From contig NC_043023.1 in NCBI RefSeq assembly GCF_006345805.1, positions 15,376,001-15,440,000 on the forward strand: a DNA stretch of 64,000 nucleotides. Reading direction: 5' to 3'. Positions 4,246 through 56,620 of the stretch are shown one piece after another. The stretch's first letter is position 1, and every line of letters begins with the position of its first letter. The DNA is from Octopus sinensis (lineage: Eukaryota). Position numbers and translations under genes: made by a program. The notes below the pieces were generated by a model. It was not told the origin of the DNA. It saw nothing but the letters and a program-made list of their open reading frames with translations, and did no database searches.

Positions 4246-4934
4246 GTTAATTCTATTCGCCAATAAATGTCTTTAATTAAGCCAAGAAAATTTGGATTTT
4301 ACTTGGCATGGCCATGAAAAAGCACCGAATTTTTACCTTTTTTTTTATTATAGTAGATATTCCATTTGCTGACTGTGTCGATTCAAAGCCGTCTATTGAA
4401 TTATCATAGAGGTATTATTTGCTAAACATCTATATTTGCTGTTCCTGTCGAAATAATCCACGTTAATTATGTCTGATTTTTGCTCCTGTGAATAATCTGC
4501 AATCTAATAAAACATAAATAGCTGACTGCAACATGAGGCCAGTGGTACCGCGATGATAAAACAAGATACACCTTTTCGTAGACAGAATCAGCAAATGGCT
4601 TAAACTTGAAAAGAAACGAATACACAAACGTATCAATGATCCAGACCTTCAACACATGTGAATGCAGAATTTCTTTAAAAAATTTACATTATTAATAAGG
4701 TTACAGAAGGAAAAGTCGTGGTGGGTTGGTGTTTAAATTATAGTTGTGTTTATGTTTGATGTATTCTAAAAGTCAGGACAGTCGGGAACACAAGCGAATT
4801 TCATTAAGAGGTCTGCTCAGTCAGGGGTGACCATGGGCTAAACAACAGTGACTTGCCACGTTTCTGAAGATAGTAGAATATTATTGTCCACCGTTTTGTA
4901 GTTTAACATTTTCCATAATATCTGAAGGTGGAGG

Positions 4935-5050
4935 GGTTAAACTAAAGCGTTACACCATTCAAAGAAACAAAAAAAAAATGTGTGTAATAGGTGTAAAACA
5001 AGCCAATGTGGTTAGCCATGGATGGCTTCTAAACTTCCTTTAGTTTAACC
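4935..5050. mobile_element. Minimal Merlin derivative (two termini, ~115 bp)
   Basis: GGTTAAACTAAAGCG at 4935 and CCTTTAGTTTAACC ending 5050. Confidence 0.75.
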
Positions 5051-5163
5051 GAATTAACATCGATGTCAAACTAGCAACTTTTAAAACTTTTTACTTTTGT
5101 TTGGAGTTTCGAATTAGCCAGGTTAATCGGCTTCTGCTAAAAAATAAATATATATTACATCTT

Positions 5164-5640
5164 ACCTGTTTTGATAAATAGATCATATGTTACGATAATT
5201 AGATTAATGTGAATTAATGTTAATTACGCAAAAGAGCAATTAACGGGAATATAGTTTAAAGACGCTCTAAAAGTCGGCATGGAAACTCAACGAAACGAAC
5301 TAAAATCCTGACGTATACCTCGTATTACTACACATTTGTCGGATGATAAAACTGAGTTGGTAAATTTTTAATGTTTTATTATTGCTATAATTACTACTTA
5401 AAATTTTGAATCTTAAGAAAAAAATCCAAATGATGGCAAAAGATACAAAACTAAAGCTTATTTTCCAGTCGATCGCTACTTTTACGCTGTTCTGTTGTCG
5501 AACCCGTAAGTTACAGGGACGGAAAGAAACGAATCCAGCTTATCAGAGTGATGTTGGATGAGGATAGGGGGAAACATGCAGGCATCAGTGTTCGAAAACC
5601 ATTTTTGGTTTGTTTATATTCCAGTAACTTAGTTGTGCAA
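5164..5640 (-). promoter_or_regulatory. Putative promoter and non-coding first exon of A
   Basis: Core TTAGTTCGTTTCGTTGA (5287-5303, minus) followed ~135 nt later by CAG|GTAAGA (donor at 5165). The same module is found gene-sense upstream of C, D, E, F and G. Confidence 0.6.
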
Positions 5641-5835
5641 TGGAAGAGGGCGGGGGTAAAGAATACGCACACCACCCGTTTACGGTGTAAGCCTAACCAA
5701 TGCGTCGCAGGAGGCGGAAGAGGTCAAGCAGGACGCACGTGTGGTCATCGACGAAGGGACAGTTCGAGCAGAGACGAGGAAGCGACAGGACGTGTCAAAT
5801 TCGTAAGAGACCTCGGATCTTCGCCGAGGTAAGGC
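5640..5835 (+). promoter_or_regulatory. CpG-rich putative promoter and first exon of B
   Basis: GC box GGGCGGGG, CCAAT box and GCGGAAG in a CpG-rich patch, then GAG|GTAAGG donor at 5829. Confidence 0.55.
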
Positions 5836-5969
5836 CTTTTGTATTTCTTCCTCCCGTTGCTTCTCCTTCTGTTGTCCTCTTCGTCCATCACACCACACAT
5901 ACGCATATACGTACGTACGTACATACATTCATACGCACATACACATATCCATGCATGCATACGTACAGA

Positions 5970-6182
5970 ATGTTGTTTACCTCAATAGACGTCATTGATT
6001 GGTTGAAATTGCAGAAATTGAAGAGATAAAAAAGAACAAATATCTTACAAACTATAGGATTTTCTCAATAAAGCCAAGAGAAAAATATGTTTTATAAACA
6101 CATTCTACCAGTATACGAAGTTTGAAATTTTTTATTTAGTTCGAAATTATGTTAAAAACTGCCGGTCAAACCGAAAAGATCC
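5970..6182. mobile_element. MITE family A half element upstream of B
   Basis: Ends CCGGTCAAACCGAAAAGATCC. With its flank 6183-6290 it is the reverse complement of ~34930-35290. Confidence 0.8.
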
Positions 6183-6486
6183 TAAATTCTTTCTAGAGTA
6201 GTTCGAAAATTTAGTTAGGAAATTCAATACTTGTCCTTCTCATCAAGTAAACTCTTAGCAGGAAAAGAATAAGAAAAATGCCTTTTATCAAACGCTTTCT
6301 TAGCAACATTTGTTTTCCTCATTGCCAGGAATATTTACAAAAGTATTTCGCATTAAGTTTGAATGTGAGAAAATCTGGAAAGGTGTTTGTATCATTTTTA
6401 GATATTCAAGATCAGATTTGCTGTAGAAGATATATATAAAGAAGAAGTGGAAAATATATTTTCTGTCTGTATACTACAGAACAATA

Positions 6487-7456
6487 ATGAATAGTCTGGA
6501 GATGTTAAAAGAAAGAGAAAAGTTATCAGACCAATGTGATATCTGTAAAAAGACTTATTCTAGTAAGGGAAATCTCACTGTTCACAAATTCATTCATGCA
6601 GGGGGGAAACAATATCATTGTGATATCTGCGGTAAATCATTCTCTCAAAAAAGTCACCTTACTCATCACAAATACAATCATACTGGAGAGAAACCATATC
6701 AGTGTGATATCTGTGGTAAATCATTCTCTCAAAGGAATGCCCTTTCTTATCAAAAAATTCTTTCATACTGGAGAGAAACCAAATCAATGTTGTATTTGCG
6801 GTAAATCATTCTCGCATAGAAGTTCCCTTGATTCTCACAAACACATTCATACAGGAGAGAAACCACATCAGTGTGATGTTTGTGGTAAATCATTCTCTCA
6901 AAAAAGTAGCCTTAATTCTCACAAATACATTCATACAGGTGAGAAACCGTATCAGTGTGATATCTGTGATAAATCCTTTTCATTAAAAAGTTATTTAACT
7001 ACTCACAAATCCATTCATACAGGAGAGAAACCATATCGATGTGATATTTGTGGTAAATCATTCACTCAGAAATATTGCCTCACTCATCACAAATACACTC
7101 ATACTGGAGAGAAACCATATCAATGTGATATTTGTGGTAAATCATTCTCTCAAAAGACTGCCCTTTCTTATCACAAAGTCGTTCATACTGGAGAGAAACC
7201 ATATCACTGTGATATCTGTGGTAAATCATTCCCTAAAAAATATAACCTTACTAAACACAAAGCCATTCATACAGGAGAGAAACCACATCACTGCGATATT
7301 TGTGGTAAATCATTCTCTCAAAAAGGTTACCTTGATTCTCACAAATCAGTTCATACAGGTGAGAAACCATATCAGTGCTATATCTGTGGTAAATCATTCT
7401 CTCAGAAGAGGTACTTAAATAGACACAAATGCATTAATACAGGGGACAAACCATAG
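6487..7456 (+). pseudogene. C2H2 zinc-finger locus B (11 finger units), one frameshift
   Basis: ORFs 6487-6804 and 6536-7456 overlap. There is one extra A in the A-run at 6752-6757. Ends TGDKP-TAG. Inverted paralog of A. Confidence 0.9.
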
Positions 7457-8406
7457 CACTGTAGTATCTGCAGTAAATTATTCCATTTAAGAAACTATTT
7501 AATTAATTACAAGTCTGCTCATACTGGAGAGAAACTATGTGACTGTGATGTCTGCAGCAAATCATTCTCTCAGGAATATGCTGTATATACTTATAAACGT
7601 ATTCATACAGGAGAGAAACTCTATTGGTGTGATATCTGAGGTAAATCATTCTCTGTGGAACAATATTGAACTCATCACAAATACATTCATACAGGAGAGA
7701 AATCATATCACTGTGACATCTGGGACAAGTCATTCTTTCATAGAGAGAAATAATAAACTAAACACAAACATATTCATACAGGAGAAGATTCTGATGACTG
7801 TGTAATCTGTGCTAAATCATTCTCTCAATAATCTACCTTAACTAAACATATACTTATTCATATTGATCAATAACAATATCAATGATAAAACAGATGTCCT
7901 GCTGAATAAAATACAGCAAATGTATTACTTTTTACAAAATAAATTCATTTTTCACATTTTCCTCATTTGCATCAACTCACTAATTACGATTTGTGTTTTT
8001 TATTCAAACAATATTGATTATATTAATTTGCTCTGTTTTCTTGTGGATATATTATTTTGACACAAATGTATTACACTCCAGTTCCCAGCCATGATCAGTT
8101 ATCCTCTGCTGGACACACTCAGGGATCCCAGGATCTGCACCCTTTGTGCTACTGCCCACATATTCTGGCACTAGCTGGAGGCTTATTGCTGTTTGTCACA
8201 GTTTTGGGTGTAGAGTGGGAAATATTTTTCAAAAGCCTAATGCCCCACTCTACCTATGGTTCAAGCACATCCCCGCTCAACCCATGCAAGTGATTATCAT
8301 CATACTTATTTTTTGCTAAATCCTTCTGTAGAGCAGGTTTTCATGGTCTTGTTCTTACCAGACACCAAGCAGGGATTTATGATGGGCATCTGGTTAGAAT
8401 GGCACC

Positions 8407-11745: not shown

Positions 11746-12145
11746 GGTCTTTTCAGTTTGAACAGTAGTTTCTAAAAAAAATTTCCACGTAACTAAACAC
11801 TTTTAAACTTCGTATACTGGTAGAATGTGTTTATAAAGCATCTTCTTCTCTTGGCTTTATTGAGAAAATTCTACGGTTTGTAAGATATTTGTTGTTTTTT
11901 TTCTGCAATTTCAACCAATCATTGACGTCTATTGAGGTGAAATCATTCTGTGCCATATGAATATGTCCCTTGTTTAAGAAACAGATTGGGTTTATTTACA
12001 TTTGTGAAGAAAAAAAGATACCCTTTCCTCCACCCCTAAATCTAAAAGAGATTGAAATGCAATGGATCGATACTAGGGTCATAATAATGGGTGACAATTT
12101 CATATGACACCGCCAGAAAAACTGCTGTTCAAACCGAGAAGATCC
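11746..12145. mobile_element. MITE family A, short monomer form
   Basis: Termini GGTCTTTTCAGTTTGAACAG / CTGTTCAAACCGAGAAGATCC; body matches one arm of the palindromic form. Confidence 0.8.
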
Positions 12146-12189: not shown

Positions 12190-12691
12190 CGATAAAGATA
12201 CCCTTCCCCCACCCCTAACCCTAAAATAGATTGAAATGCAAAGATCGATACTAGGGTTATAATTATGGGTGACATTTTCATTTGACACCACTAGAAAAAA
12301 ATCCCATTTTCTGTAGTGGTGTCGTATGAAATTGTCACCCACAATTATAACCTTAGTATCGATCTTTGCATTTCAATCTATTTTAGGGTTAGGGGTGGGG
12401 GAAGGGTATTTTTTTTTCTTTGCAAATGTAAATAAACCCAATCTGTTTCTTAAACAAGGGACATATTCATACAGCACGGTATGTTTTGACTCCAAATAGA
12501 CATATTTCATTGGTTAAAATTGTCGAAATCCTTGATTTTAAAGTGGAAATATGTTACAAACTATAGAACTTTCTCAATAAAGCCAAGAAAAAATGATGTT
12601 TTATAAACACATTCTACCAGTATACGATGTTTAAAAGTGTTTAGTTAACTATAAATTGTGTTGACATATGCCATTCAAAAGGAAAAGATCA
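12190..12691. mobile_element. MITE family A arm (further arms at 13718-13945, 14075-14383, 18010-18245)
   Basis: Conserved TTCTACCAGTATACGAAGTTTAAAAGTGTTTAGTTAACTA...AAAAGGAAAAGATC ends. Confidence 0.8.
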
Positions 12692-13717: not shown

Positions 13718-14953
13718 TGATCTTTTTCTTTTGAACGGCAGTTTTCAACACAATTTCTAGTTAACTAAACACTTTTAAACTTCGTATACTGGTAGAATGT
13801 GTCAAAATAAAACCTTTTTTTCTCTTGGCTTTCTTGAGAAAATTGTAATTTGTTTGTTTAACGAAGTTCAATTTTTCGAATTTTAACCAATCAATGGCCT
13901 CTATTGAGATAAAATCATTTGCTGCGTCTAAAACTGAGACAACATCACCCTAACCCAAACCCTAAATTTTAGCATTTCGTTTTTTTTCTCAATTGTTTAA
14001 TTAATTTAAGGATAACAATTAAGAAAAAAAACGAAACGCTAAAACAAAAGCAAAAATTCAACAAAAACAAAATGGTTAGGGTTAGGTGTGGGGGAAGAGT
14101 ATCTTCTTTTCTTCGCAAATGTAAATGAACCCACTCTGTTTCTTAAACGAAGACACATTCATACAGCACAGAATGTTTTGACTCCAAATGGACGTATTTC
14201 ATTGGTTAAAATTGCCAAAATCCTCGATTTTAAAGTGGAAATATGTTACAAACTATAGAACTTTCTCAATAAATCCAAGAAAAAATGATGTTTTATAAAC
14301 ACATTCTACGAGTATACGAAGTTTAAAAGTGTTTAGTTAACTATAAATTGTGTTGACATCTGCCGTTCAAAAGGAAAAGATCCGTGCAAACTTGTACGAA
14401 GTACAGACGTCTGCGTGTTAATATACATCTCAGGAAAAACAGCCTTCTCTGATATTCAATAAGCTTGGTGGCACCCTGGTAGTACATATCATTGTGGAAA
14501 ACGTAAAACCACCTATAATTGTTATATATATATTAATTACTAGAGTGACCAACGACTTGACTGGTTACAGACACCGGGTACTATTTAAGAAAAGTGGTCC
14601 CGCTGCGCTCCATCGCGCATCCGCGCTAGCTAGTTGTGACTAGTCGATCCTACAACTACCTAGCGTAAGTGCGCGTATGCAAATTAATAGATGCGCAAAA
14701 CATGTACTGTAAATCCTCGAGTATAATCCACATTTTTTCCCCCAAAATTTAAAGGTCAAAATCCTAGGTGCATATTGTACACGAGGTTAAAAATGAAAAT
14801 TATTTTCTAAGCAATGTCTGAGTCTCTATTTGCTGTCCGGCAATGTTTATTCAGACGCATTTTGTGATGTCGGGCGTGAAAATACTTTAAGCTAAGCCTG
14901 AAAGCAATGAAGTCATAAAAGAATCATCCATAACTTGCAACATTTATTAAACA

Positions 14954-17900
14954 CTAGCAGAGATACCCGGATTTGCCCGGTTACATTCTATAGAAGAATT
15001 AGACTTTTCTGTTATATATATATATATATGGATACACACAAATATATGTATATTAATATAAATACATGAAAGTACATGAAGTTTGTTAAAAAAAAGGGGA
15101 TCATGTATATACCGCCTGGCTTTTGAGATTATAACACCTCGTTGTAAACAATGTTCCTTGTTTTTCCTTGTGGAGCATATACAAAAAGGGTTCTTTTGGT
15201 TCCTACTCTTGAGCAGCCAACATACAGTTGCCTATGCGAGAAGCAGGGCTCTTCCAAGAGAAGACCAGCTACAGAGAGGGTTTGACCCCGAGATTTGTTA
15301 ATGGACATGGCAAAGCTGACACGAAGGGGGAATTGCAGTCTTCTGAATGTAAATGGAATTTCTGCTCCTGATGGAGTAAGAGAAAATCTTGGAATAAAGA
15401 CGTCATCACCTTTTCCACATCCAAAAAGAATGATCGCCTCGATAACCTGTGATATCATTTTCTTTATCACCAGTCATGTTCCATTGCAAAGTCTTGGTGG
15501 TAATATGTGTGGAGGTAGTCGAGGAGGCTCCAGTGAATTGAGAAATTCAGGAGGACAGTTCACAACTTCATTTATATCTGGAATTGTATCAACAGACTTG
15601 TAAGTGTGTATAGTGCCGGGAAGAGAATGCATTAGCTGTTGATTAATTTTGTTAACAGTGACATTTTTTGGAGCTAATATTGCTCTTTCACACTGCCAAT
15701 TGTGATTTTGGTAGTTTTGTGTGAAGTTGGGAAAGACTTTGTTTTTGAGGTCATCTATAGAATTAACAACAGAGGAAAATGACCACACTTCCATTTGTCC
15801 TGCACCATCGAAAGGCATCTTGCCTTCACCAAGTGTCAAAATGTCCTGTGCAAACTTTGTGGACATTTTGTCGCCGTGTAGCTGAGCTCTCATGTTAGTG
15901 GTGAGACTAAAGATTGTAACATGATGCCACAGGGTAGAGGACTTTAGGCATGCTTGAACTTCATCAGCTCTAGTGCTTTTCGGAAGGACAGGAAGAGTTT
16001 GCCTGAAATCACCTGACAACAGAAGCGTTACACCTCCCATTGGAGCCTGACAGTCTCGGATGTCTTTCAGGGCTCTATCTAATGCTTCCAAAGCTCCCTT
16101 GTGAGCCATAGTGCACTCATCCCAGACAATTACATAACACATTTTAAGTACTTGTCCCTGATCTGAGCTTTTGTTGATGTTTCATGAAGGCATTTCGGAT
16201 GCTGCTAAATTGAGAGGGAGTTTAAAAGTTGAGTGTGCTGTCCTGCCTCCGGGTAACAAAGTAGCTGCAATGCCAGAGGAGGCTACAGCTACTGCAATGT
16301 CCTGATGCTACCTAACTTCTGCAAGGAGAAGCTTTGTAATAAATGTTTTTCCTGTCCCTCCAGGAGCATCGAGGAAGAAGATTCGTCCCTCGCGTTGGCG
16401 TACACTGTTAAGAATAGTTCTGTAGGCCTGCAGCTGGTCCGGAAGTAATTTAGGCTCATTTTCAACAATGTACTTTGAAAGCGCTTGAGTGTCGTAGGTT
16501 GTTTCACGAATGACAGCAGTAGGAAGGCTATTTGACCCTTACCTGAATGCTTGTGGCAGACCATACGTCGACAATACATTTCCACCCAGTTTAGCAATTC
16601 TGTCTTCAATGTCAATGAGTGTTTTGTTATAGATTTCATTGCTGATATCCCTCCATGTCAGGATAGAGCAGTTGAGCTTGGCGCTGAAGGGGACAATGTT
16701 TTTGAGATTCCGGTTCGAATGTAAGGCAAGTTTGAAAGTGTTCCCAACAGTTATTAGTTGTAGTGGTAGAGTGTTTATGCCGAATATGTACGTATGCACG
16801 TATATATATGTATGTATGCCTGTATATTTGTACAAAATCCACTGAGAAGGCTTTTGTTGATCTGAAGCTACAGCAGAAGACACATGCCAAGTCACCACAC
16901 AGTGGGACTGAACCCAGGACCATGTGTTTGGAACGTAGTTTGTTACCACACAGCCACACCTGCCCCTATGTATGTGTGTGTGTGTGCGCGCGTATGTGTA
17001 GATATATTATGCACGTATATATGTGTACATATTACATGTACATCTATATATATACATCTACACATAAAATACAAAATACAAAGTTATATCTTGATATCGC
17101 TAGTGATAACAATACTCAAAAATATATAACAGACTGGAATTGTAGGCCTATCTCTTGCAATTTCGATCAATTGGATCTTGTCCTCCCTCATGTATAGAAG
17201 TGTACGGCTGCAGTGAAATTCATTTTTGGACTTTCTTCTATCGAAGGCATTTTAACAAAAATGCTTCCGTAAAGAAGGTGAAAATATTGTCAATTTCCCC
17301 AAACAGGGACACAATTCAATTTTTAAACAATAACCAAAGCACCTTCTCCGAGAGGGGGAGGGTTACGGTTTACAATTATTTAACAAATGCAACACAACAA
17401 CATTTCCCTGACGAGGAACCAACAAACGTGATTGCAATAGTCAAACAGTAATAATAACAACAAACCTTTTTAATTTATCCCCATTTATGTGAAACCACTT
17501 ATTCAAGTTCAAGTCATTGATGCAATTTTATACGAATTGCTAATACACACACACACACATAATAAGGGTGAAAAATTGAATTTTAATTTGATTAATTTCA
17601 ATTGAAAACCAGTGGTGTAGCATATAAGACCATAGCGGATCTTCCTCTAGCAAAAACGATGACCACTATTGATGGCACATCCCTGTTATATAATACTTTC
17701 ACTTAAATAGTTTCACACTTGCAAAGAGAAAGTAGGAGAAAGTGTGGTGGTAATAGCAGAAGTAAACCACTTGAAATGAGAGAGGCAACTCGTAAAATAT
17801 TGAGTTTTCTCGAATTTTTGCTTAATTGGGGGTCAAATTAAAAAAATTTTACATGCCATGACCCAATCGAATCTACTTGGGAAAATCACAGGTAAATTCC

Positions 17901-17984: not shown

Positions 17985-18278
17985 TTATTACTGTTATTTC
18001 TTTATTTTCTGATAGGATGTTGTCTCAGTTTTAGACACAGCAAATGATTTTAGCTCAATAGAGAGCATAGGATTGGTTAAAATTCGAAAAATTAAACTAC
18101 ATTAAACAAACAAATAACAATTTTCTCAAGAAAGCCAAGAGAAAAAAATGTTTTATTTTGATACATTCTACCAGTATACGAAGTTTGAAAGTGTTTAGTT
18201 AACTAGGAATTTTGTTGAAAACTGCCATTCAAAAGGAAAAGATCCGGCTTAGAGTGATTTACTGCAGATATTACAGTT

Positions 18279-19268
18279 CTATGGTTTCTCTCCTGTACGA
18301 ATGTTTTTATGAGAGGTTAAAGAGCGCAAGCAAGACAATGATTTACCACAAATATCACACTCATAAAGTTTCTCTCCTGTATGAATGGATTTGTGATAAG
18401 TAAGGCTATGCTTATGGGAGAATGATTTACCACAAATACAACATTGATATGGTTTCTCTCCTGTATGAATGGATTTGTGAGAAGTAAGGTGAATTTTCTG
18501 AGAGAATGATTTACCACAAATATCGCATTGATATGGTTTCTCTCCAGTATGAATGGATTTGTGATAAGTAAGTCTATGCTTATGGGAGAATGATTTACCA
18601 CAAATACGACATTGATATGGTTTCTCTCCAGTATGAATGGATCTGTGACAAGTAAGGTGAATTTTCTGAGCGAATGATTTACCACAAATATCACAGCAAT
18701 ATGATCTTTCTCCTGTATGAATGTATTTGTGAGAAGTCAGGTGAATTTTTTGAGAGAATGATTTACCACAAATATCACAGCAATATGGTCTTTCTCCTGT
18801 ATGAATGTATTTGTGAGAAGTCAAGTGAATTTTCTGAGAGAATGATTTACCACAGATATCACAGTGATAAGGTTTCTCTCCTGTATGAGTGGATTTGTGA
18901 GAAGCAAGGTTACTTTTCCGAGAGAATGATTTACCACAAATATCACACTGATATGGTTTCTCTCCTGTATGAGTGGATTTGTGTCTAGTCAGGTTACATT
19001 TCTGAGAGAATGATTTACCACAAATATCACAGTGATATGGTTTCTCTCCTGTATGAATGTATTTGTGAGAAGAAAGGTGACATTTATCAGAGAATGAATT
19101 TCCACAGATATCACATTGATATGGTTTCTCACCTGTGTGAATGGATTTGTGTCTAGTAAGGTGAATTTCCTGAGAGAATGATTTACCACAAATATCACAG
19201 TGATATGGTTTCCTATCTGCATGAATGAATTTGTGAACAGTGAGATTTCCCTGATTAGAAAAAGTCAT
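18279..19268 (-). CDS. C2H2 zinc-finger protein C (329 aa, ~10 intact fingers)
   Basis: Open ORF of TGEKP-linked fingers. The family ATG (MNPQEM) at 19330 is out of frame; the in-frame ATG is at 19268. Paralog of G. Confidence 0.9.
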
Positions 19269-19299
19269 TTTACAGATATCACATTGATGTGATAATTTT

Positions 19300-20929
19300 C
19301 TGTTTCTTTTGTCATCTCTTGAGGATTCATTATTGTTCTATAGTATACAAACACAAAATATAATTTTGCTTCCTTTTTTTATATATTTCTATTGCTTATA
19401 TTTCCAGCAGTTCCGATCTTCATCAATTTCTGAAGATGATACAAACACCTTTGCAGATATCTCCCGCTCCAAACAGAATGTGAAAGACTTTAGCAAATAT
19501 TCCAGGCAATGATGGAAACAAATGTTGCCATCAATTCAGAAGAAATATTTCACAGTTTTCCACCATAGACAAATCGTATAAAAAGAGTTATGTCAAATAT
19601 TTATAACATCTTCCATTAGATGATCAATATTCATGAAGTATCACTAACATTTCACCTCCTGAAATGACACAGAAACAGAAGAAGATATAGGAAAGACTTA
19701 AAAAGCAGAGATTCAACTATAAAAAAAATATAACTACATCTTCATAATGATAAACTGTGGATATAATCCTTTAATTTGTCTTTGAAATTTATTTATGGTA
19801 ATTTATAATATGGTAACCCTTTTGTTACCATATTTCTGCTGAGATTCAGTGTGTTTCTTTCAATTATTTTAAATATAATAAAGAATTTAGTAAACTAACT
19901 TAGTTATCATTCAACTAGTGTTAGGAACATAAATTGTAACTAAGGTTTGGTGGAAGATTTTAATTCAAAACTTATGAAAACAAGACATTTTACCACAGAG
20001 CCAGAGCCCGTTTTGGCCGGGTTAGTAACAAGAGGGTGTGGTCTTTGAAATTTATTTTGTTATTAAAATTATATGATACAACCTTGTGTAATGTCTACAT
20101 TTACACGGACTTCAGTTCCTCTTCCTTCAGATATTATGTAAAACATTATCCCTTTAGTGTTCAGATTATTCTGTTAAATGTAATTCTTTTTCACTCAAAT
20201 TGTTTTGAATTAATCATGCAATATCTTATAGCTTTGAGGTTTCAATGATGTGATTGTTTATTTCTAGAATGTCAATGTAGGTTAGGTGTGAGAGGCCAGA
20301 TACCACCAGTTTGAATATAAAACATGCAGAATATCTGGGCCTGATATGGCCGGTTTAAACAATAAAGGGTTCAACTATAGGATATTGGACAATAATATGA
20401 TAAGTGAATACTGTTTAACCCTAGGTTATCCCTGACTGAGCAGATCTATTATTGAAATTAGGTAATGTTCATGATTGTTACAACTTCTGTAACAGATCAA
20501 ACATAAACATAAACTACAATTTAGTGAACCAACCCATCATGACTTTTCCTCTCGTAACTTTATCAATAATAAAAACAAACTGCACTCACATATGTTGAAG
20601 GTGTGGTCACTAATTTAGAGAAAGTGTTCTGTGAATTGACGTATGAAGATTAGAGCCAGGACAGAATGGCGATCCTTCGGTATAGGTACACACGTGACTC
20701 TGTTTACGTTTCTGAAGATAACAAAAACACTTTTCTCTCCCCCCCCCCTACATATAAAGAAACACCTTTTTGAAATGTATCCAGTACTTCCGAAGTACAC
20801 CGGTATTTATACCGTAAGATCGCCTTTCTTTTTAAAACAAAGTAAATAAAACACAAAAGCATAGGTACTACTAGCGAAGACTGGACCCGGTACGCGCTAG
20901 CTAGTCGTAAGTAGTCGTTCCTACAACGA
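19300..20929. repeat. 5' region of C, inverted paralog of the 5' region of G (43727-45290)
   Basis: Mirror ORFs 20036-20248/44425-44637 and shared MITE B and C fragments. Confidence 0.92.
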
Positions 20930-21378
20930 AAATTTTAGGAAAAAAGTAAATAAGAAATAACTGCAAAATTTTACCGATGAGTGTGTTAAATTATACGGCA
21001 CAAAAAGAAAATGACTCTCCCCAGACACAACAGAATATGCTTCAATACACGAATTCATATAAAGAATCTTGCAAACCAAATAGAATTAATATCTGTTTCT
21101 TTATTACCCACAAGGGGCGAAACACGGACGAAACAAACAAGGCCTGACAAACGGATTAAGTCGATTACATTGACTCCAGTGCGTAACTGGTACTTAATTT
21201 ATCGACCCCGAAAGGATGAAAGGCAAAGTCGACCTTGGCGGAATTTGAACCCAGAACGTAACGGCGGACGAAATTAATATCGATGTCAGACTAGCAACAT
21301 TGAATACTTTCATTATTGTCTGGAGTTTCGAATTTTCCAGGTTCTTCTGCTTTCACTAAAAATAAAATATGTACGATA

Positions 21379-21545
21379 TCTTACCTGTTATGATAAATAA
21401 ATCAGTGCTAAAAGTCAATTAACGCAAACCACACCAAAAAAGCCATTCAGCGGGAAACGTAATTTAAAGAAAGCTCAAAAATTAGACATGGAATGTCGAC
21501 GAAACGAACTGTATATCCGGATGTATATATATCGTAATACTATAG
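21379..21545 (-). promoter_or_regulatory. Putative first exon of C (inverted copy of D's)
   Basis: CAGTTCGTTTCGTCGAC core (21495-21511, minus) and CAG|GTAAGA donor at 21384. Confidence 0.55.
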
Positions 21546-21689
21546 CACATACTTAAATACACAGAAACGTGTGCGTATATGTGTGTTTCATTTAAATTCT
21601 GTATAATTAAATTGCGACCAGGCTGAAGTATCAGCTCATAGGATTCATTTAACAAAGCAACACCAGAACATATTTTTAATTTGGTAGTT

Positions 21690-22180
21690 ATACTGTTGCA
21701 CAACGAAGTTACAGGAATGTAAACAAAGCAACAATGGTTTTCGAATACTGGTAGAAATAACACACACGAGTCTTCCTGTTTTCCCTCCGTCCCTCTTTGA
21801 TAAGTCCTGTTGGTTTCTTTCCGTCCCTGTAATTTAAGGGTTCGGTAACAGGATAGTGGAAAAGTACCAATAGATATGAAAATAAGCAGTCAGTTTTATA
21901 TGTTTTGTCATCATTTGGATTTTTCCTCATAACTCACATTTTTGAAAAGTAATTATACCAATAAAAAACATTGAGAATTTACCAACTTAGTTTTAGCATC
22001 CGATAAATGTATATAGTATTACGATATATACAACATCCGGATATACAGTTCGTTTCGTCGACATTCCATGTCTATTTTTTGAGCTTTCTTTAAATTACGT
22101 TTCCCGCTGAATGGCTTTTTTGGTGTGGTTTGCGTTAATTGACTTTTAGCACTGATTTATTTATCATAACAGGTAAGATA
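21690..22180 (+). promoter_or_regulatory. Putative promoter and first exon of D
   Basis: Core at 22046-22062; CAG|GTAAGA donor at 22173. Confidence 0.6.
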
Positions 22181-22554
22181 TCGTACATATTTTATTTTTA
22201 GTGAAAGCAGAAGAACCTGGAAAATTCGAAAGTCCAGACAATAATGAAAGTATTCAATGTTGCTAGTCTGACATCGATATTAATTTCGTCCGCCGTTACG
22301 TTCTGGGTTCAAATTCCGCCAAGGTCGACTTTGCCTTTCATCCTTCGGGGTCGGTAAATTAAGTACCAGTTACGCACTGGGTCAATGTGATCGACTTAAT
22401 CCGTTTGTCTGTTCTTGTTTGTTTCGTCCGTGTTTCGCCCCTTGTGGGTAATAAAGAAACAGATATTAATTCTATTTGGTTTGCAAGATTCTTTATATGA
22501 ATTCGTGTATTGAAGCATATTCTGTTGTGTCTGCGGAGAGTCATTTTCTTTTTG

Positions 22555-22800
22555 TGCCTTATAATTTAGCACACTCATCGGTAAAATTTTGCAGTTATTT
22601 CTTACTTATTTCCTTTTTTCCTAAAATTTTCTTTGCGTCTTGCAACCTTTTCAATAGTTTTGACTCTGTCCGTTATTTACACTGCTTTTCCTTTTGTTTG
22701 TTTGGGTGCCTTGAAACTAAACTATGGAAAGTATTAGATTTATGACTCAGGTCATTATAGACGAAAGTAATGTCTTGTGTCATGAGTATCATTTTAAAGT
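22555..22800 (-). mobile_element. Merlin internal fragment upstream of D
   Basis: Reverse complement of ~3030-3275. Confidence 0.7.
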
Positions 22801-23264: not shown

Positions 23265-24374
23265 ATGAATAGTCTGGAGATGTTAAAAGAAAGAGAAAAG
23301 TTATCAGACCAATGTGATATCTGTAAAAAGACTTTTTCTAATAAGGGAAATCTCACTGTTCACAAATTCATTCATGCAGGGGGGAAACTATATCATTGTG
23401 ATATCTGTGGTAAGTCATTCTCTCGAAAAAGTCACCTTACTCATCACAAATACACTCATACTGGAGAGAAACCATATCAGTGTGATACCTGTGGTAAATC
23501 ATTCTCTCAAAGGACTGTCCTTTCTTATCACAAATTCGTTCATACTGGAGAGAAACCATATCACTGTGATATCTGTGGTAAATCATTCACTCAGAAATGT
23601 AGCCTCACTCATCACAAATACACTCATACTGGAGAGAAACCATATCACTGTGATATTTGTGGTAAATCATTCTCTCAAAAGACTGCCCTTTCTTATCACA
23701 AATTCGTTCATACTGGAGAGAAACCATATCACTGTGATATCTGTGGTAAATCATTCTCTAAAAAATATAACCTAACTAAACACAAATCCATTCATACAGG
23801 AGAGAAACCAAATCAATGTCGTATTTGCGATAAATCATTCTCTCAAAGAAGTTACCTTGATTCTCACATATCCATTCATACAGGGGAGAAACCACATCAG
23901 TGTGGTGTTTGTGGTAAATCATTCTCTCAAAAGAGTAACCTTAATTCTCACAAATACATTCATACAGGTGAGAAACCATATCAGTGTGATATCTGTGATA
24001 AATCCTTTTCATTAAAAAGTTATTTAACTACTCACAAATCCATTCATACAGGTGAGAAACCATATCGATGTGATATTTGTGGTAAATCATTCACTCAGAA
24101 ATGTAGCCTCACTCATCACAAATACATTCATACTGGAGAGAAACCATATCAATGTGATATTTGTGGTAAATCATTCTCTCAAAAGACTGCCCTTTCTTAT
24201 CACAAATTCGTTCATACTGGAGAGAAACCATATCACTGTGATATTTGTGGTAAATCATTCTCTAGAAAATATAACCTTACTAAACACAAATCCATTCATG
24301 CAGGAGAGAAACCATATCACTGTGATATCGGTGCTATATCTGTGGTAAATCATTCTCTCAGAAGAGGTACTTAA
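23265..24374 (+). CDS. C2H2 zinc-finger protein D (369 aa, 12 intact fingers, frameshifted tail)
   Basis: ORF MNSLEM... with 12 fingers. A deletion junction at 24325-24329 shifts only the last ~15 codons. Confidence 0.92.
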
Positions 24375-25362
24375 ATAGACACAAATGCATTAATACAGGG
24401 GACAAACCATAGCACTGTAGTATCTGTAGTAAATTATTCCGTTTAAGAAACTATTTAATTAATTACAAGTCTGCTCATACTGGAGAGAAACTATGTGACT
24501 GTGATGTCTGCAGCAAATCATTCTCTCAGGAATATGCTGTATATACTTATAAACGTATTCATACAGGAGAAAAACTCTATTGGTGTGATATCTGAGGTAA
24601 ATCATTCTCTGTGGAACAATATTGAATTCATCACAAATCCATTCATACAGGAGAGAAATCATATCACTGTGACATCTGTGACAAGTCATTCTTTCATAGA
24701 GAGAAATAATAAACTAAACACAAACATATTCATACAGGAGAAGATTCTTATGACTGTGTAATCTGTGCTAAATCATTCTCTCAATAATCTACCTTAACTA
24801 AACATATACTTATTCATATTGATCAATAACAATATCAATGATAAAACAGATGTCCTGCTGAATAAAATACAGCAAATGTATTACTTTTTACAAAATAAAT
24901 TCATTTTTCACATTTTCCTCATTTGCATCAACTCACTAATTACGATTTGTGTTTTTTATTCAAACAATATTGATTATATTAATTTGGTCTGTTTTCTTGA
25001 GGATATATTATTTTGACACAAATGTATTACACTCCAGTTCCCAGCCATGATCAGTTATCCTCTGCTGGACACACTCAGGGATCCCAGGATCTGCACCCTT
25101 TGTGCTACTGCCCACATATTCTGGCACTAGCTGGAGGCTTATTGCTGTTTGTTACAGTTTTGGGTGTAGAGTGGGAAATATTTTTCAAAAGCCTAATGCC
25201 CCACTCTACCTATGGTTCAAGCACATCCCCGCTCAACCCATGCAAGGGATTATCATCATACTTATTTTTTGATAAATCATTCTGTAGAGCAGGTTTTCAT
25301 GGTCTTGTTCTTACCAGACACCAAGTAGGGATTTATGATGGGCATCTGGTTAGAATGGCACC

Positions 25363-26425: not shown

Positions 26426-28959
26426 TTTTACATGTTTCAGGCATTTGACAGTGGCCATGCTGGAGCACCGCCTTTAGTTGAGCAAATAAACCCCAGGACT
26501 TATTCTTTGTAAGCCTTGTACTTATTCTATTTTTCTCTTTTGCCAAACTGCTATGTGACGGGTGTGTAAACACACCAGCATCAGTTGTCAAGCAATGTTG
26601 GGGGGACAAACACAGACACACAAGCATACATATATATGATAGGCTTCTTTCAGTTTCCGTCTACCAAACCCACTCACAAGGCTTTGGTCGACCCGAAGCT
26701 ATAGTAGAAGACATTGAACCAATGTGCCACATTGTGGGACTGAACCCGGAATCTTATGGTTCATAAGCAAGCTACATACCACACAGCCACTCCTGCGCCT
26801 ATACTCTTTACCCGTTTCAGTCATCTGACCACGGCCATGCTGGAGCACCGCCTTTAATCGAGCAACTCGACCCCAGGACTTATTCTTTTGTAAACCCAGT
26901 ACTTCTTCTATTGGTCTCTTTTGCCGAACTGCTAAGTAACAGGGACATAAACACACCAGCATCGGTTGTCATGCAATGCTAGGGGGACAAACACAGACAC
27001 ACACACGCATATATATATATACACGACGGGCTTCTTTCAGTTTCCGTCTACCAAATCCACTCACAAGGCTTTGGTCGGCCCGAGGCTATAGTAGAAGACA
27101 TTTGACCAATGTGCCACGTTGTGGGACTGAACCCAGAACCTTATGGTTCATAAGCAAGCTACTTACCACACAGCCACTCCTGCGCCTATGTTGAGAAAAA
27201 CAGCAAAATTTCTTTGTAGCATGACAGGTGACAAATTAAATTTCATAGGCGAAATGTGGGGATATGTCACATTTCCAGTGAAAGCATGCAAGGAGAATGT
27301 CTTCATCATTAAAAATGTTGATTATCTGTTTGGTACCTTTTTTTTTTCTTGTTTCAGCCCAGAGCTGCGGCCATGCTGATGCACCGCCGTTTTGTGCTAC
27401 ACTGTTATTACGAAGAACCACCCCCAATATGTGGCACTTGGTGAAGAATGGGGTTTGATATAGCTACTCTCATTTGCACCTCTTGCTGTGAGGTAGGTTC
27501 ATCTGGGACTCTTGACAGGAAGATGTCCAGCTTTGATTTAAAAACCACTGCATCTACTTTGTGGATCATCGTCTAGCGTTCGTTTTCCATGCTAGCATGG
27601 GTTGGATGGTTCAACTGGGGTCTGGGAAGCCAGAAGGCTGCATCAGGCCCAGTCTGATCTGGCAGTGTTTCTACGGCTGGATGCCCTTCCTAACGCCAAC
27701 CACTCAATGAGTGTAGTGTGTGATTTCTATGTGCCACCGGCACCGGTGCCAGATGAGGCTGGCAAACGTCCATGATCGGATGGGGCTTTTTACGTGCCAC
27801 CGGTACAAGGAGCCAGAGGAGGCTGGCAAACGGCCATCTAAACATTTAATACCTTGTGTTTTGTAAATCAAATAATATCAACAAATTATAAAACAAACAC
27901 ATAACAAGAAGAATTTTTGCAGAACAGACGTTATTTTAATGAAATATATCTTGTAATCACCTGAAAAGACACATCTACACTGTTGGATACTCATAAAGCA
28001 ACTCTTCAATATTGCACTCATAAAGGATCAAAGCAAGATGTGTTGAAACAATTGTAGTGATCAATAAATATTCTTGTATCTTCCATTAATTATATCATCA
28101 TCATCTATTTCTTTGCTGCCCACAAGGGGCTAAACATAGAGGGGACAAACAAGGACAGACAAAGGGATTAAGTCGATTACATCGACCCCCCCCAGTGCGA
28201 AACTGGTACTTTATTTATCGACCCCAAAAGGATGATAGGCAAAGTCGACCTTGGTGGAATTTGAACTCAGAACGTAACGACAGACGAAATACCGCAAAGC
28301 ATTTCGCCCGGCCTGCTAACGTTTCTGCATCATCATCTTCGTTTAATGTCTGCTTTGCTTGATGGCATGGGTTGGACGGTTTGACCGGGTCTCTGGGAAG
28401 CCACATGGCTGCACCAGGCTCCAGTCTGATCTGGCAGTGTTTCTACAGCTGGATGCCTTTTTCTCCATGCTGAGCAGGGCCATCTCTCTGACAGGATCTG
28501 TCTTTGGTCTTTGCTAAATTTACTGTATGGTTTTTCAATCCAGATTTTGCTTCCATACCTGAAATTTGTTCTCTAATTGTGGTAGGGATTCAGCAATAAG
28601 AACAAGGTCATCAGCTTGGAAGTGATCCCAAGGGCAGCCAATCTTAAATTCCTTCCTAATGCCAACCACTCCGTGAGTGTAGTGGGTGCATTTTACATGC
28701 CAACAGCACAGGTGCCAGGCAAGGCTGACAACGGCTATGATCGGTTGGTGCTTTTCACCGGCATAGAAGCCAGTCAAGGTGTTGCTGGCATCAGCCATGT
28801 TCGGATGGTGCTTTTTACTTGCCACCGGCACAGGTATCACAACTACAATTTCCATTTGATTTTTTGTTGTTCATGTACTTGACTCAATAGGTCTCCTCAT
28901 ATATAAATGTAAGTTCCATGGATCAAGGTGTAGAATTGTATCAAGTAGAAGCACAAATG

Positions 28960-30200
28960 ATGCTATCTTCCTGGTGAGGCAAAAGCAGAAGTACTTGGTC
29001 AAAGATATATCTTTGTATTTGGCTTTTGTTGACATGGAAAAAGCTTTGGACAGAGTCCCCTACTCCATTATTTGGTGAGCAATAGAGAAGCTAGGGAGAG
29101 ATGAGTGGTTGGTGAGACATGTAAAAGCCATGTATAGGGATGCTGTCAGTAAGGTAGACGTCACCAATGAGTATAGCATGAATTTTAGTGTCAAAACAGG
29201 AGTCCACCAAGGATCGTTTTTCACCCCACTCTTGTTTATCATAGTCCTGCAAGCAATAACAGAGGAATTTAAGATTGGCTGTCCTTGGGATCTCTTCCAA
29301 GCTGATGACCTTGTTATTATTGCTGAATCCCTACCAAAATTAGAGAACAAATTTCGGATCTTTTCCTTTTGAACGGCACTTTGTAACATAATTTCTAGTT
29401 AACTAAACACTTTTAAACTTCGTATACTGGAAGAATGTGTTTATAAAACATCATTTTTTCTTGACTTTATTGAGAAAATTCTATAGTTTGTAAGATATTT
29501 CGTCTGAAAATTTGAGTATTTTGGCAATTTTAACCAATCGCTGGAGTCCATTTAGGTAAACATTCCGTGCTGTATGAATATGTCCCTCCTTTAAGAAACA
29601 GATTGGGTTTATTTACATTTGTGAAGAAAAAAAGATACCCTTCCCACACCCCTAACCCTAACTCTAAAATAGATTGAAATGCAATAGATCGATACTAGGG
29701 CCATAATTATGGGTGACATTTTCATTTGACACCGCTAGAAAAAAATCCCACTTTCTGTAGCGGTGTCGTATGAAATTGTCATCCATAATTATGGCCCTAG
29801 TATCGATCTATTGCATTTCAATCTCTTTTAGATTTAGGGTTCGGGGTGGGGAAAGGTATCTTTTTTTCTTCACAAATGTAAATAAACCCAATCTGTTTCT
29901 TAAAGGAGGGACATATTCATTATGCACAGAATGTTATTTACCTAAATGGAGGTCAGCGATCAGTTAAAATTGCCAAAATACTCGAATTTTCAGACGAAAT
30001 ATCTTACAAACTATAGAATTTTCTCAATAAAGCCAAGAAAAAATGATGTTTTATAAACACATTCTAATAGTATACGAAGTTTAAAAGTGTTTAGTTAACT
30101 AGAAATTATGTTGAAAAGCACCGTTCAAAAGGAAAAGATCCCAAATTTCAGGTATGGAAGCAAGATCTGGATTGAAAAACCATACAGTAAATTTAGCAAA
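28960..30200 (+). mobile_element. RTE-clade LINE reverse-transcriptase fragment (interrupted by MITE A)
   Basis: LYLAFVDMEKAFDRVP...GVHQGSFFTPLLFIIVLQAITEEFKIGCPWDLFQADDLV. Confidence 0.85.
29356..30141. mobile_element. Palindromic MITE family A, full-length (786 bp) with 8-bp TSD
   Basis: GGATCTTTTCCTTTTGAACGGCA...CCGTTCAAAAGGAAAAGATCC. TSD CAAATTTC at 29348-29355 and 30142-30149; empty paralogous site at ~52850. Confidence 0.93.
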
Positions 30201-31121: not shown

Positions 31122-31277
<156 letters not shown>

Positions 31278-31345
31278 TTATGAGTGGACTTATGATTACT
31301 CAAATATTTTCTTACACAGAATGATTTACTGCAGATATCACAGTG

Positions 31346-32566
31346 CTATGATTTCTCTCTTGTATGAATGTATTTGTGTCTATTAAAGTTACTTTTACGA
31401 GAGAATGATTTACCACAGATATCACAGTGATATCGTTTCTCTCCTGTATGAATGTATTTGTGTCTAGTAAGGTTACTTTTTCCAGTGAATGATTTACCAC
31501 AGATATCACACTGATATGGCCTCTCATCAGTGTGAGTAAGTTCATGAACAGTTAAATTACTTCTTAATACAAAGGATTTATCACAGATATTGCAGTGATA
31601 TGGTTTCTCTCCTGTATGAATGGATTTGTGAGAAGTAAGGTTACCTTTTTGAGAGAATGATTTACCACAAATATTGCAGTGATATGGCTTCTCACCTGTA
31701 TGTGTATATTTGTGAGTAGTTAAATGACTTTTTAATGGAAAGGATTTATCACAGATATTGCAGTGATATGGTTTCTCTCCTGTATGAATGTGTTTGTGTG
31801 TAGTAAGGTTACTGTTATGAGAGAATGATTTTCCACAAATATCACAGTGATATGGTTTCTCTCCTGTATGAATGTATTTGTGATGAGTAAGATGATCTTT
31901 CTTAGAGAATGATTTACCACAGATATCACAGTGATATGGTTTCTCTCCTGTATGAGTGTATTTGTGAGAAATAAGGCTACCTTTTCGAGAGAATGATTTA
32001 CCACAAATTTCGCAGTGATATGGCTTTTCATGAGTATGGAAACGTTTGTGTCTAGTTAAATCACTCCTTAGTGAAAAGGATTTATCACAGATATCGCATT
32101 GATATGGTTTCTCTCCTGTATGAATGTATTTGTGAGTTTTAAGGTGACTTTTTTGAGAGAATGATTTACCACAAGCATCACAGTGATGTTGTTTCTCTCC
32201 GGTATGAATGTATTTGTGACAAGTTAGGCCAGTCTTTTGAGAGAATGATTTACCACAGATATCACAGTGATGTGGTTTCTCTCCTGTGTGAATGTATTTG
32301 TGACAAGTAAGGCTACCTTTTTGAGAGAATGATTTACCACAAATTTCGCAGTGATATGGTTTCTCTCCTGTATGAATGTATTTGTGATGAGTAAGATGAT
32401 CTTTCTGAGAGAATGACCTGCCACAGATATCACAGCGATATTGCTTTCCACTTGGATCAATACACTTGTGAACAGAGAGATTTGCTGTATTAGAAAAAGT
32501 CTTTTTACAGATATCACATTGGTCTGATAATTTTTCTCTTTCTCTTGTCATCTCCGGCGGATTCAT
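31346..32566 (-). CDS. C2H2 zinc-finger protein E (406 aa, 13 intact fingers plus degenerate first finger)
   Basis: Uninterrupted ORF. ATG MNPPEM at 32566; the frame stays open upstream to 32698 without an ATG. Confidence 0.93.
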
Positions 32567-34124: not shown

Positions 34125-34329
34125 TAAAAGACATAAAAAATTTGGTGCTTTTTCATCGACATACCAAGTAAAAATGAAGATTAGATTTTCTTGGCATTAT
34201 CCAAGAAGTTTAACGGAGAATGGAATTAATATCGAAATCAGATTAGCAACATTCAAAACTTTCACAATTGTCTGGAGTTTCCAATTAACCAGGGTCATCG
34301 GATTTTACTACAAACAAAACATGTATTGT

Positions 34330-34650
34330 ATCTTACCTGTGATGATAAATAAATTAGTGTTTAATATGAATTAACGTTAATTACGGAAAGTATCGATTTG
34401 GCGGGAAATATAATTTAAAGGCACTTTAGAAAAATCGATACGGAACGTCAACGAAACGAACTAACTTCTAAATATTGTATCCATCCTATTACTACGCATT
34501 TGTCGGATGCTAAAACTGAAGTGGTAAATTTTTAATGGTTTTTATTGCTATAATTACGTTTACGAAATGTGAATTATAATGAAAAAACCCCGAATAATGG
34601 CAAAAAATACAAAAGTATATGCTGACTACTTATTTTCAGGTTTTTTGCTA
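34330..34650 (-). promoter_or_regulatory. Putative promoter and first exon of E
   Basis: Core at 34448-34464 (minus); CAG|GTAAGA donor at 34336. Confidence 0.6.
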
Positions 34651-35051
34651 CTCTTACGATCTCCTCTTTAAACCGGGTAGTGTCGTTCTTCGTTTATTTC
34701 TTTTTAAGGTTAAGGTGGGAAACCCGTGGGTTGTTTTCTAACCAATACCCAAGAAATTATGTAAAGCTGACTCGCAAAGTCTTATCCAATATTATTTTTA
34801 TTAAATCCAAATTCAATCGTTTAAAGAGTATTAGAAATAAAAACGGGAGAGACTCCCTTAGTTTTATTTATTTATTTTTATCTAGTTTCAGCATACGAGC
34901 TGTGGCCATGCTGGGGCACCGCCATTCTTTTTAAGAAGGCGTGTGATAAAAGGCATTTTGCTGATATTTTCTCTGCTAAGAGTTTACTTGATAAGAAGGA
35001 CAAGTATTGAATTTCCAAACTAATTCTTCAAACTACTCTGGAAAGAATTTA

Positions 35052-35480
35052 GGATCTTTTCGGTTTGACCGGCAGTTTTTAAAAATAATTTCTACGTAAC
35101 TAAACACTTTTAAACTTCGTATACTGGTAGAATGTATACTGCTAGATCGCTTATTTGTGTAATTAAAACATCTTTTTCTCTTGGCTTTATTGAGAAAATC
35201 CTACAGTTTGTAAGATATTTGTTGTTTTTTATTTCTGCAATTTCAACTAATAAATGACGTCTATTGAGGTGAAAACATTCTGTGCCGTATGAATATGTAC
35301 CTCGTTTAAGAAACAGATTGGATTTATTTACATTTCTGAAGAAAAAAAAACATACCCTTCCCCCCACTTCTAACCCTAAAACAGATTGAAATGCAATAGA
35401 TCGATACTAGGGTCATAATTATGGGTGACAATTTCATATGATGCCGCTAGAAAAAACTGCCGTTCAAACGGAAAACATTC
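35052..35480. mobile_element. MITE family A, short monomer form, between the E and F promoter modules
   Basis: Terminus GGATCTTTTCGGTTTGACCGGCAG; body homologous to 11746-12145. Confidence 0.8.
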
Positions 35481-35629: not shown

Positions 35630-35850
35630 TTGCATTTTTTCTTACAATTCACATTTTCAAAAAGTTACAACTTTACTTTTAGCATCAGACAAAAGTGTTA
35701 TTAATACGGGAAGCACAACAACCGGATTCTTAATTCGTTTCGTTGACGTTCCGTGTCGGCTTTTCGATGTGTCTTTTTCGCTAGATCGCTTATTTGTGTA
35801 ATTAAAAATATTATAAAACACCGACTAATATATTATAAGAGGTAAGATGT
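35630..35850 (+). promoter_or_regulatory. Putative promoter and first exon of F
   Basis: Core at 35730-35747; GAG|GTAAGA donor at 35842. Confidence 0.6.
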
Positions 35851-36594
35851 AAGACATATTTTCTTTTTAGTAAAAGACTATGTATCTGGCTAATTTGAAA
35901 CAGCAGGCAGTTTTGAAAGTTTTAAATACTGCTTCTCTGAAATCGATATTAATTCTATTGTCCAGTAAACTTCGTAAATTATGCCTAGAAAATCTGGATT
36001 TTACTTGTGGCCATGAAAAAGCACCAGATTTTTAATTACAATTATTTTAATAAATACTTCCTTATTTTAGTAGATATTTCAGTGTTTTCATTTCAAGTTT
36101 TAATTTGGAAAACTGACAGTTCATTCTATTAATAAACTGGTATAATTTTAGTAAAAAATAAAATTAAGAAGTGATTTTGTTATGGTTATCTGGATTGCTA
36201 TAACCTTTAGAATAATACCTATCCAAACCGATTTTGGACATTTTCATTTTTAACTTAAAAACCACGGGAGGGGCCTTTTCGGTTAAAATAAAACAAGTAA
36301 ACATTTTCAGGGGAAAAGGTGAACAATTCAAGGGATGTTTTGCTGGTGTTTCTAGCAGAACCCAAACCACCCTCCCTTTTCACTCTCACATGTATTATCT
36401 TTTTCTTACTTGTTTCAGTCATTTTGACTGCGGCCATGCTGGAGCACCGCCTTTAATCGAGCAACTCGACCCTGGGACTTATTCTTTGTAAGCCCAGTAC
36501 TTAATGTATCGGTCTATTTTGCCGAACTGCTAAGTGACCGGGACATAAACACACCAGCATCGGTTGTCAAGCAATGCTAGGGGGACAAACATAT

Positions 36595-38653: not shown

Positions 38654-40289
<1,636 letters not shown>

Positions 40290-42636: not shown

Positions 42637-42779
42637 AATGTTGTTGTTGCCACCAACACCGCTATTGTTTACATTAATTTGAAATTTGCCAGCAAAATCT
42701 CATAAAATGGCAATGTTCTATAAGTTGTACAAGCTTTTATGCTTTATATGAAAATAAAGAAGTTAAGTATGTTATGTGA

Positions 42780-48690: not shown

Positions 48691-48714
48691 GTAGAAGAGG
48701 GTGCCATGAAATCG

Positions 48715-56583: not shown

Positions 56584-56620
<37 letters not shown>

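Follow-up and report, generated by a model that had tools for sequence, protein, structure and literature searches.

Between the divergently oriented C2H2 zinc-finger genes C and D of Octopus sinensis (NCBI RefSeq assembly GCF_006345805.1, contig NC_043023.1) there is a large, slightly diverged inverted repeat, in which about 620 nt from the 5' region of gene D are found again, in inverted orientation, upstream of gene C. The two genes lie in a window of 64,000 nt (positions 15,376,001 to 15,440,000 of the forward strand of the contig; all coordinates given below are those of the window), which contains nine C2H2 zinc-finger genes, here named A to I, with tandem finger arrays and a finger period of 84 nt. 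The repeat is in all probability a real and evolutionarily fixed small inverted partial duplication, formed by snap-back or template-switch synthesis, which has left gene C with a chimeric 5' region. The alignments establish the structure of the repeat, the direction in which it was copied, both of its junctions and the independent ageing of its arms. The repeat is composed of three parts:

20924–21544, minus strand: left arm, upstream of gene C, a derived inverted copy of the core promoter, the putative exon 1, the splice donor and the first ~460 nt of intron 1 of gene D
21545–22011, no strand: single-copy spacer of 467 bp
22012–22635, plus strand: right arm, upstream of gene D, the parental copy, which has kept its ancestral context

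An inverted repeat upstream of C and D, with a spacer of about 470 bp, had been proposed in an initial annotation of the window, and a blastn self-comparison confirmed it. Positions 20924-21544 match the reverse complement of 22635-22012 at 96.8% identity over 626 columns (E = 0), and the spacer measures 467 bp. Alignment of both arms with MAFFT gave 619 aligned positions with 13 substitutions (6 transitions and 7 transversions) and 4 indel events, corresponding to a Kimura two-parameter distance (K2P) of 0.021. At either end of this alignment the identity of the arms falls abruptly to noise. When folded as single-stranded DNA, the two arms pair into a stem of ~500 bp, and the spacer becomes the loop (-636 kcal/mol). 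The earlier suggestion that the repeat could extrude a cruciform is on general grounds unlikely, since extrusion from duplex DNA needs a very short spacer or none and is not expected across a loop of 467 bp; to fold, both arms would have to be contained in one molecule of single-stranded DNA or of RNA.

The right arm is the parent. Copying from D towards C, as first proposed, is supported by homology to the paralogues which crosses the ends of the right arm only. At the outer end, D 22555-23320 matches I 62545-61781 at 97.5% identity, and A at 94%, collinear up to the coding exon and passing position 22635 unbroken. The inner end at 22012 is crossed both by homology to A (22285-21696 vs 5052-5640, ~73%) and by homology to E (22298-21847 vs 34211-34668). 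The similarity of the left arm to the paralogues breaks at the left arm's own two ends. In addition, the left arm contains features which are private to D, namely the breakpoint of D relative to A and I at 22555 and, at the identical site, an insert resembling a short interspersed nuclear element (SINE):

21091–21274, minus strand: SINE-like insert (tRNA-derived type) of the left arm, with the same insertion point as in the right arm
22283–22464, plus strand: SINE-like insert of the right arm, specific to D and absent from the corresponding units of A and E

Paralogue homology across the ends of one arm and D-private features within the other therefore show that the copying ran from D to the C side. 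Other copies of the SINE-like element are found at 28103-28290 and 54272-54445, and at 30342-30523 of L001, a 31-kb zinc-finger locus of Octopus vulgaris. With the other copies of the element as outgroup, at least 4 derived changes are assigned to the D arm and at least 2 to the C arm, and several C-private changes are located in the outermost 81 nt of the arm. The presence of private derived changes on each arm means that the two have aged independently.

The D-specific insert shared by the arms, together with the private changes of each, makes a transposon, an assembly palindrome and simple gene conversion unlikely as sources of the repeat. An assembly palindrome could arise from a palindromic chimeric read or from a misplaced haplotype copy, and the assembly in question contains several broken zinc-finger frames, some in homopolymer runs, which may reflect imperfect polishing. 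Palindromes originating from chimeric reads, however, have identical arms and no spacer. Here the arms differ by the 13 substitutions and 4 indels, which include a clustered change, and derived states are present on both of them; they are separated by 467 bp of unique sequence, the whole repeat lies inside the window, and its outer junction is a microhomology join amid unique sequence and not a collapse at a long repeat. We regard an artefact as very improbable.

At its outer end the left arm meets sequence of a different origin:

19297–20929, minus strand: G-type part of the upstream region or intron of gene C, matching G 45316–43728 (K2P 0.028)
20924–20929, no strand: outer junction CAACGA, at which a truncated G-type repeat is joined to a truncated D-type intron segment

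The initial annotation had noticed that the upstream region of C mirrors that of G up to this junction, and the match does stop exactly at ...CCTACAACGA (C 20929, G 43728). Between C 19297-20929 and G 45316-43728 the BLAST identity, gaps included, is 92%, and 43 of 1567 positions are substituted. Past CAACGA, both G and a third copy of the repeat (14622-14700) go on with GCGCGTATGCAAAT; the G-type repeat of C is consequently truncated at this point, and the junction is not the terminus of a miniature inverted-repeat transposable element (MITE), as had been thought. The Merlin fragment assigned to the other side of the junction did not hold up either, as these 81 nt belong to intron sequence that is common to D, A and I and extends up to the coding exon. 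Neither a transposase nor terminal repeats were found in support of the MITE and Merlin labels. The hexamer CAACGA, which was believed to be present in both parents, is preserved in C and G and in the copy of A, and reads CAAAGA in D, the actual parent, and CAATGA in I. The strict microhomology between the present-day parents at the outer junction thus amounts to 2 nt (TC/GA), and would be 6 nt only if D once had the state now seen in A. The description of the junction as a non-homologous join with short microhomology is nevertheless supported, its flanking sequences being unrelated.

The flanks of the whole unit, ...CTACAACGA and TCTTTGCGTC..., are not direct repeats, and no target-site duplication was found at them. 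This bears on the possibility that 20924-22635 is a Foldback-like transposon, bounded by long terminal inverted repeats, that entered the interval between C and D. Palindromic repeat families do exist in this genome, such as the one at 29349-30148, which is 90.8% self-complementary. An insertion is however difficult to reconcile with the paralogous gene sequence that continues across the right arm at both its ends, with flanks devoid of a target-site duplication, and with the fact that neither the 64-kb window nor the 31-kb O. vulgaris locus contains a second arm-spacer-arm unit, all of which makes a transposon extremely improbable.

The inner junction borders the spacer, of which the part proximal to D (21696-22011) is D-type far-upstream sequence, 72% identical to A, and the remainder (21545-21695) shows only weak similarity to a repeat. 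The spacer was also considered as a decayed palindrome. This was rejected: its sole in-register inverted match, a small one at 21689-21733 / 21807-21855, is present in the single-copy unit of A as well and is therefore intrinsic to this sequence and not the relic of a larger palindrome. A D-like 3' flank to the left of C, which would be a sign of a larger former palindrome, was not found.

These observations matter for a history in which C and D formed an old head-to-head palindrome whose central 620 nt were recently homogenised by gene conversion. An old inverted pair of first-exon units, 71% identical, is indeed present at E and F, and the differences between the C and D arms are, if marginally, unevenly spread, with 4 in the inner half and 13 in the outer half (binomial p = 0.049, or p = 0.12 if the clustered changes at 21142-21145 are counted once). 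This gradient could equally come from constraint on the promoter and exon, from the CpG-rich SINE in the outer half, or from chance. Gene conversion is not favoured, since each end of the tract falls between sequences that are unrelated: at the outer end a G-type repeat and an intron of the D/A/I type have 2-6 nt in common, and at the inner end the similarity falls from 99% to none. The rest of the spacer carries no in-register palindrome relic, and private changes are found on both arms among their 17 differences. Conversion of an older palindrome is accordingly quite improbable.

Snap-back or template-switch synthesis, the origin which we prefer, fits an inverted copy adjacent to an untouched source, with a single-copy spacer and a microhomology join. 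The copy adjoins its source, one arm is ancestral and the other novel at both sides, and there is microhomology without extended homology. The event probably started from a break or a stalled fork near D. During repair, a 3' end would have primed on the opposite strand of nearby D sequence and copied ~620 nt, beginning 34 nt upstream of the core motif and proceeding through the putative exon 1 and its donor into ~460 nt of intron 1, including the D-specific SINE-like insert. The new strand would then have been joined to the other end, at the G-type intron of C, by way of 2-6 nt of microhomology. The expected product is an inverted copy 467 bp from its source, with a G-type gene body and intron connected to a D-type exon 1 and core promoter. 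Such an event would belong to the class comprising fold-backs, templated insertions and microhomology-mediated break-induced replication (MMBIR).

In human fold-back inverted duplications the single-copy spacer ranges from 766 bp to 70 kb and the inverted microhomology from 2 to 8 bp (PMC3907307). In yeast, breaks gain short templated inverted insertions by a foldback route, mostly of 5-34 bp (PMC11724301). The C/D repeat resembles cases of fold-back, MMBIR and fork stalling and template switching (FoSTeS) in its inverted copy beside the source, its unduplicated spacer, and its few bases of microhomology without long homology. It differs from the constitutional fold-backs of humans, which are megabase duplications accompanied by terminal deletions, in that only ~620 nt are involved and the chromosome is otherwise intact. 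It also differs from the de novo cases of humans and yeast, being old, fixed, ~2% diverged and of intermediate size.

The copied arm contains one of the six exon-1 units of the window, which belong to A, the C arm, D, E, F and G. Each unit has one core motif AGTTCGTTTCGTYGAC, and the motif occurs exactly six times in the 64 kb, against 0.04 occurrences expected by chance. About 110 nt downstream of the core there is a donor, CAGGTAAGAT, whose four occurrences in the window are the exact ones of A, the C arm, D and E; at the donor position F reads GAGGTAAGAT. The elements of the C and D units are the following:

21495–21510, minus strand: copied core motif AGTTCGTTTCGTCGAC, putative transcription-start region of C, from the motif match
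21378–21387, minus strand: copied splice donor CAG/GTAAGAT (CAGGTAAGAT), which would place the end of the putative exon 1 of C at 21385
22047–22062, plus strand: core motif of D, the parental copy, from the motif match
22170–22179, plus strand: splice donor of the putative exon 1 of D (donor position 22172)
21978–22009, plus strand: conserved upstream block TTTACCAACTTAGTTTTAGCATCCGATAAATG, situated in the spacer just inside the arm of D and missing from the C copy

The arm had been described as carrying core and donor and as ending ~35 nt upstream of the core; both elements are indeed intact, and the distance is 34 nt. The upstream block, TTTACCA...CATCCGAYAAATG, is kept in A, D and E with no more than 3 mismatches and is degenerate in F and G. 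At the position of the block, the C arm has unrelated sequence.

Not all genes of the cluster possess such a unit. B and H have none in the window (5640-6535 and 47000-51000, respectively), and the similarity of B to D begins only at 6301 (97.9%); these two genes look like promoterless partial duplicates. The unit of G (42900-43160) has lost the conserved donor CAGGTAAGAT by a deletion of ~45-57 nt, and the first exon of G may therefore be defective or use another donor. A head-to-head arrangement of exon-1 units is not unique to C and D, since E and F have an older pair (34133-34533 vs 35659-36036, 71% identity), the core motifs of which (34447-34462, minus strand, and 35732-35747, plus strand) are 1.27 kb apart with the repeat 35044-35478 between them. 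A second inverted rearrangement of the cluster is found in the introns of A and I (4641-4969 and 63679-64000), which carry an inverted copy of an intron segment, 98.8% identical between the two; in C, E, G and H the same segment has sense orientation and precedes the finger exon by 0.7-1.3 kb. The inverted copy of A is 83 nt from the exon-1 unit (5052-5640, minus strand).

The 5' end of the coding part of gene C is located some distance from the copied unit:

19289–19330, minus strand: start codon region of C, with the ATG at 19330 and a 1-nt deletion in an A-run near 19296–19300, by which the frame is shifted after ~10 codons

The remaining frame of C is 329 residues long and begins inside finger 1. 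The frameshift may represent real decay or a homopolymer error. A conserved acceptor, TCATCTTCAG, ends at 19430, and splicing from 21385 to the coding exon of C would be structurally possible. If the core motif marks transcription starts, those of C (putatively ~21510, minus strand) and of D (putatively ~22047, plus strand) diverge at a distance of 537 bp, a geometry that would fit the operational definition of a bidirectional promoter by divergent starts within 1 kb of each other.

Several points weigh against the interpretation given here, either against the rearrangement itself or against its functional consequence. The inverted repeat rests on one assembly. Taking present sequences, the strict microhomology of the outer junction is limited to 2 nt. 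Microhomology at the inner junction would be hidden in the arm ends (...ACTATA / TATAGT...), and both it and the size of any deletion could be read only from a pre-event allele. The identification of the unit as a promoter with a non-coding first exon is putative, being drawn from the conservation of the motif and the donor. As to function, the C copy is without the conserved block just upstream of the core, and the reading frame of C is broken in this assembly ~30 nt past the ATG. Because of these last two points promoter capture by C, and with it the symmetric bidirectional promoter of C and D which the initial annotation proposed, is possible but unproven; the copied unit of C may be transcribed, though we incline somewhat to doubt it.

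It had also been stated that the copied segment replaced a G-type promoter of C. This proved to be an assumption. Between the arms the divergence (13/619) does not differ from that between C and G (43/1567; Fisher p = 0.45), so that divergence cannot resolve which event came first, and the values for D-I, D-A and I-A are similar (0.018-0.028). The C-G, arm and D/A/I events belong to one burst. B and H are, as described, without an exon-1 unit, and the unit of G is without the conserved donor.

A second history works equally well. C may have originated as a copy of G (from 43728 on) that was truncated at its 5' end and had no first exon, in which case no G-type promoter would ever have been replaced. 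C would then have come to lie next to the inverted D segment by the same multi-switch event, or only once the segment was already there, and the product would be the same. Other recent duplicates likewise break in intron 1 (the D-I/A homology ends at 22555, and that of B to D starts at 6301/23079), and the complete lack of an exon-1 unit in B and H is in line with such an origin, as are the indistinguishable arm and C-G divergences (K2P 0.021 vs 0.028, p = 0.45) and the fact that no G-like exon-1 remnant was found between C and D. Such a history, on the other hand, needs two events or one more complex event, and there is no flanking signature of a 3.3-kb insertion at the 3' end of C, which abuts the repeat 18016-18247. 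We consider a truncated origin of C a serious possibility, if short of probable.

Under either order of events, the inverted partial duplication has brought together a G-type gene body with a D-type first exon and core promoter. Partial duplicates can become chimeric genes by acquiring a 5' exon or a promoter from another source, and C resembles such genes in this composition. It is unlike them in that the recruited exon is non-coding, and the protein of C is for this reason unchanged; furthermore, the recipient is frameshifted in this assembly. The head-to-head arrangement recalls the collagen IV gene pairs (bioRxiv 10.1101/2023.10.18.563013), paralogues with a shared bidirectional promoter that originated by inverted duplication: in both cases related genes diverge from a short common interval, with putative starts less than 1 kb apart at C/D. 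The C/D pair is different from collagen IV in that only the promoter-proximal part and the first exon are duplicated and not the gene, C and D belong to different subfamilies, and the start sites are putative. The palindromes of mammalian sex chromosomes also have inverted arms, a spacer and the 5' parts of genes, but their arms measure from kilobases to megabases and are more than 99.9% identical; the arms described here are ~600 nt long and 97-98% identical, with private changes, and ongoing conversion is not evident.

Transcripts of C and D initiated in their respective arms would share the same first-exon sequence, save for a diagnostic base by which they could be told apart (GTCTAA in C, plus-strand 21482, and GTCTAT in D, 22075), and would not be complementary to each other; a hairpin RNA would form only by read-through across the spacer. 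Such read-through of both arms could, as a possibility, give a hairpin of ~600 bp and small RNAs against the shared first exon.

If C were transcribed from the copied unit, the locus would be a base-resolved example of a microhomology-mediated inverted copy supplying a promoter and a first exon to a neighbouring gene. Expansions of C2H2 zinc-finger genes in cephalopods are well documented (PMC12513265, PMC10547256), and how new copies obtain their promoters is less described. It might be speculated that inverted copying of promoter and exon 1 is a recurrent route to the expression of promoterless zinc-finger duplicates in octopods, with C/D as a young and E/F as an old instance and with the C/D palindrome co-regulating two genes of different subfamilies; we think this unlikely. 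As it stands, the locus mainly shows the mosaic, breakpoint-rich evolution of the cluster, and the recipient gene C may be decaying. The C/D repeat adds a new instance to a known rearrangement class, within a gene family whose rapid, mosaic evolution is familiar.

The window as a whole is AT-rich (G+C ~35%). Its nine zinc-finger genes are the following:

1135–2461, minus strand: gene A
6535–7861, plus strand: gene B
18381–19283, minus strand: gene C
23313–24817, plus strand: gene D
31140–32434, minus strand: gene E
38702–40355, plus strand: gene F
45331–46737, plus strand: gene G
51096–52249, plus strand: gene H
58794–61704, minus strand: gene I

Reading frames are broken in this assembly in A, B, C, D, F and H. 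The frameshift is located after finger 1 in A, after finger 3 in B, after finger 4 in F and in the last finger in D, and H has an in-frame stop. The broken frames can be either widespread pseudogenes or indel errors of the assembly. Among the recent duplicates (C/G and D/A/B/I) the flanks and introns differ by ~2-3% and the finger arrays are 82-85% identical in register, from which it follows that the arrays turn over much faster than the flanks.

When the full D protein was used as query, vertebrate zinc-finger proteins dominated the homology search, which gave one Octopus vulgaris protein of 63% identity. The locus of this protein is L001, in which repeat families of the window are found at 80-92% identity and the SINE-like element at 86%. 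L001 was considered as the orthologous cluster and rejected, because it contains no exon-1 unit. Exact-protein look-ups with the open reading frames (ORFs) of C, D, I, G and E gave no match, and the N-terminal 63 residues of D, used as a query, found no relative. Scans of metagenome contigs for the C junction and for a degenerate core motif likewise gave no match. No Rfam family was detected in the window, with only a chance-level match around the repeat, and a tRNA scan of the window found no genes.

Other rearrangements and mobile sequences are present outside the C/D region. The segment 26396-29093 is related to 53469-56852 by a large inverted segmental duplication of 85-92% identity, the best block of which is 27565-29093 vs 55007-53469 (92%). 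At 15474-16142, on the minus strand, an ORF contains a fragment of a PIF1-like helicase domain (E = 3e-30) and may be a Helitron remnant. The near-perfect palindromic repeat at 29349-30148 is self-reverse-complementary at 90.8% over 804 nt and occurs also at 12194-12413; further copies of its family are found at 11748-12121, 14076-14384, 35052-35464, 41981-42638 and 18016-18247.

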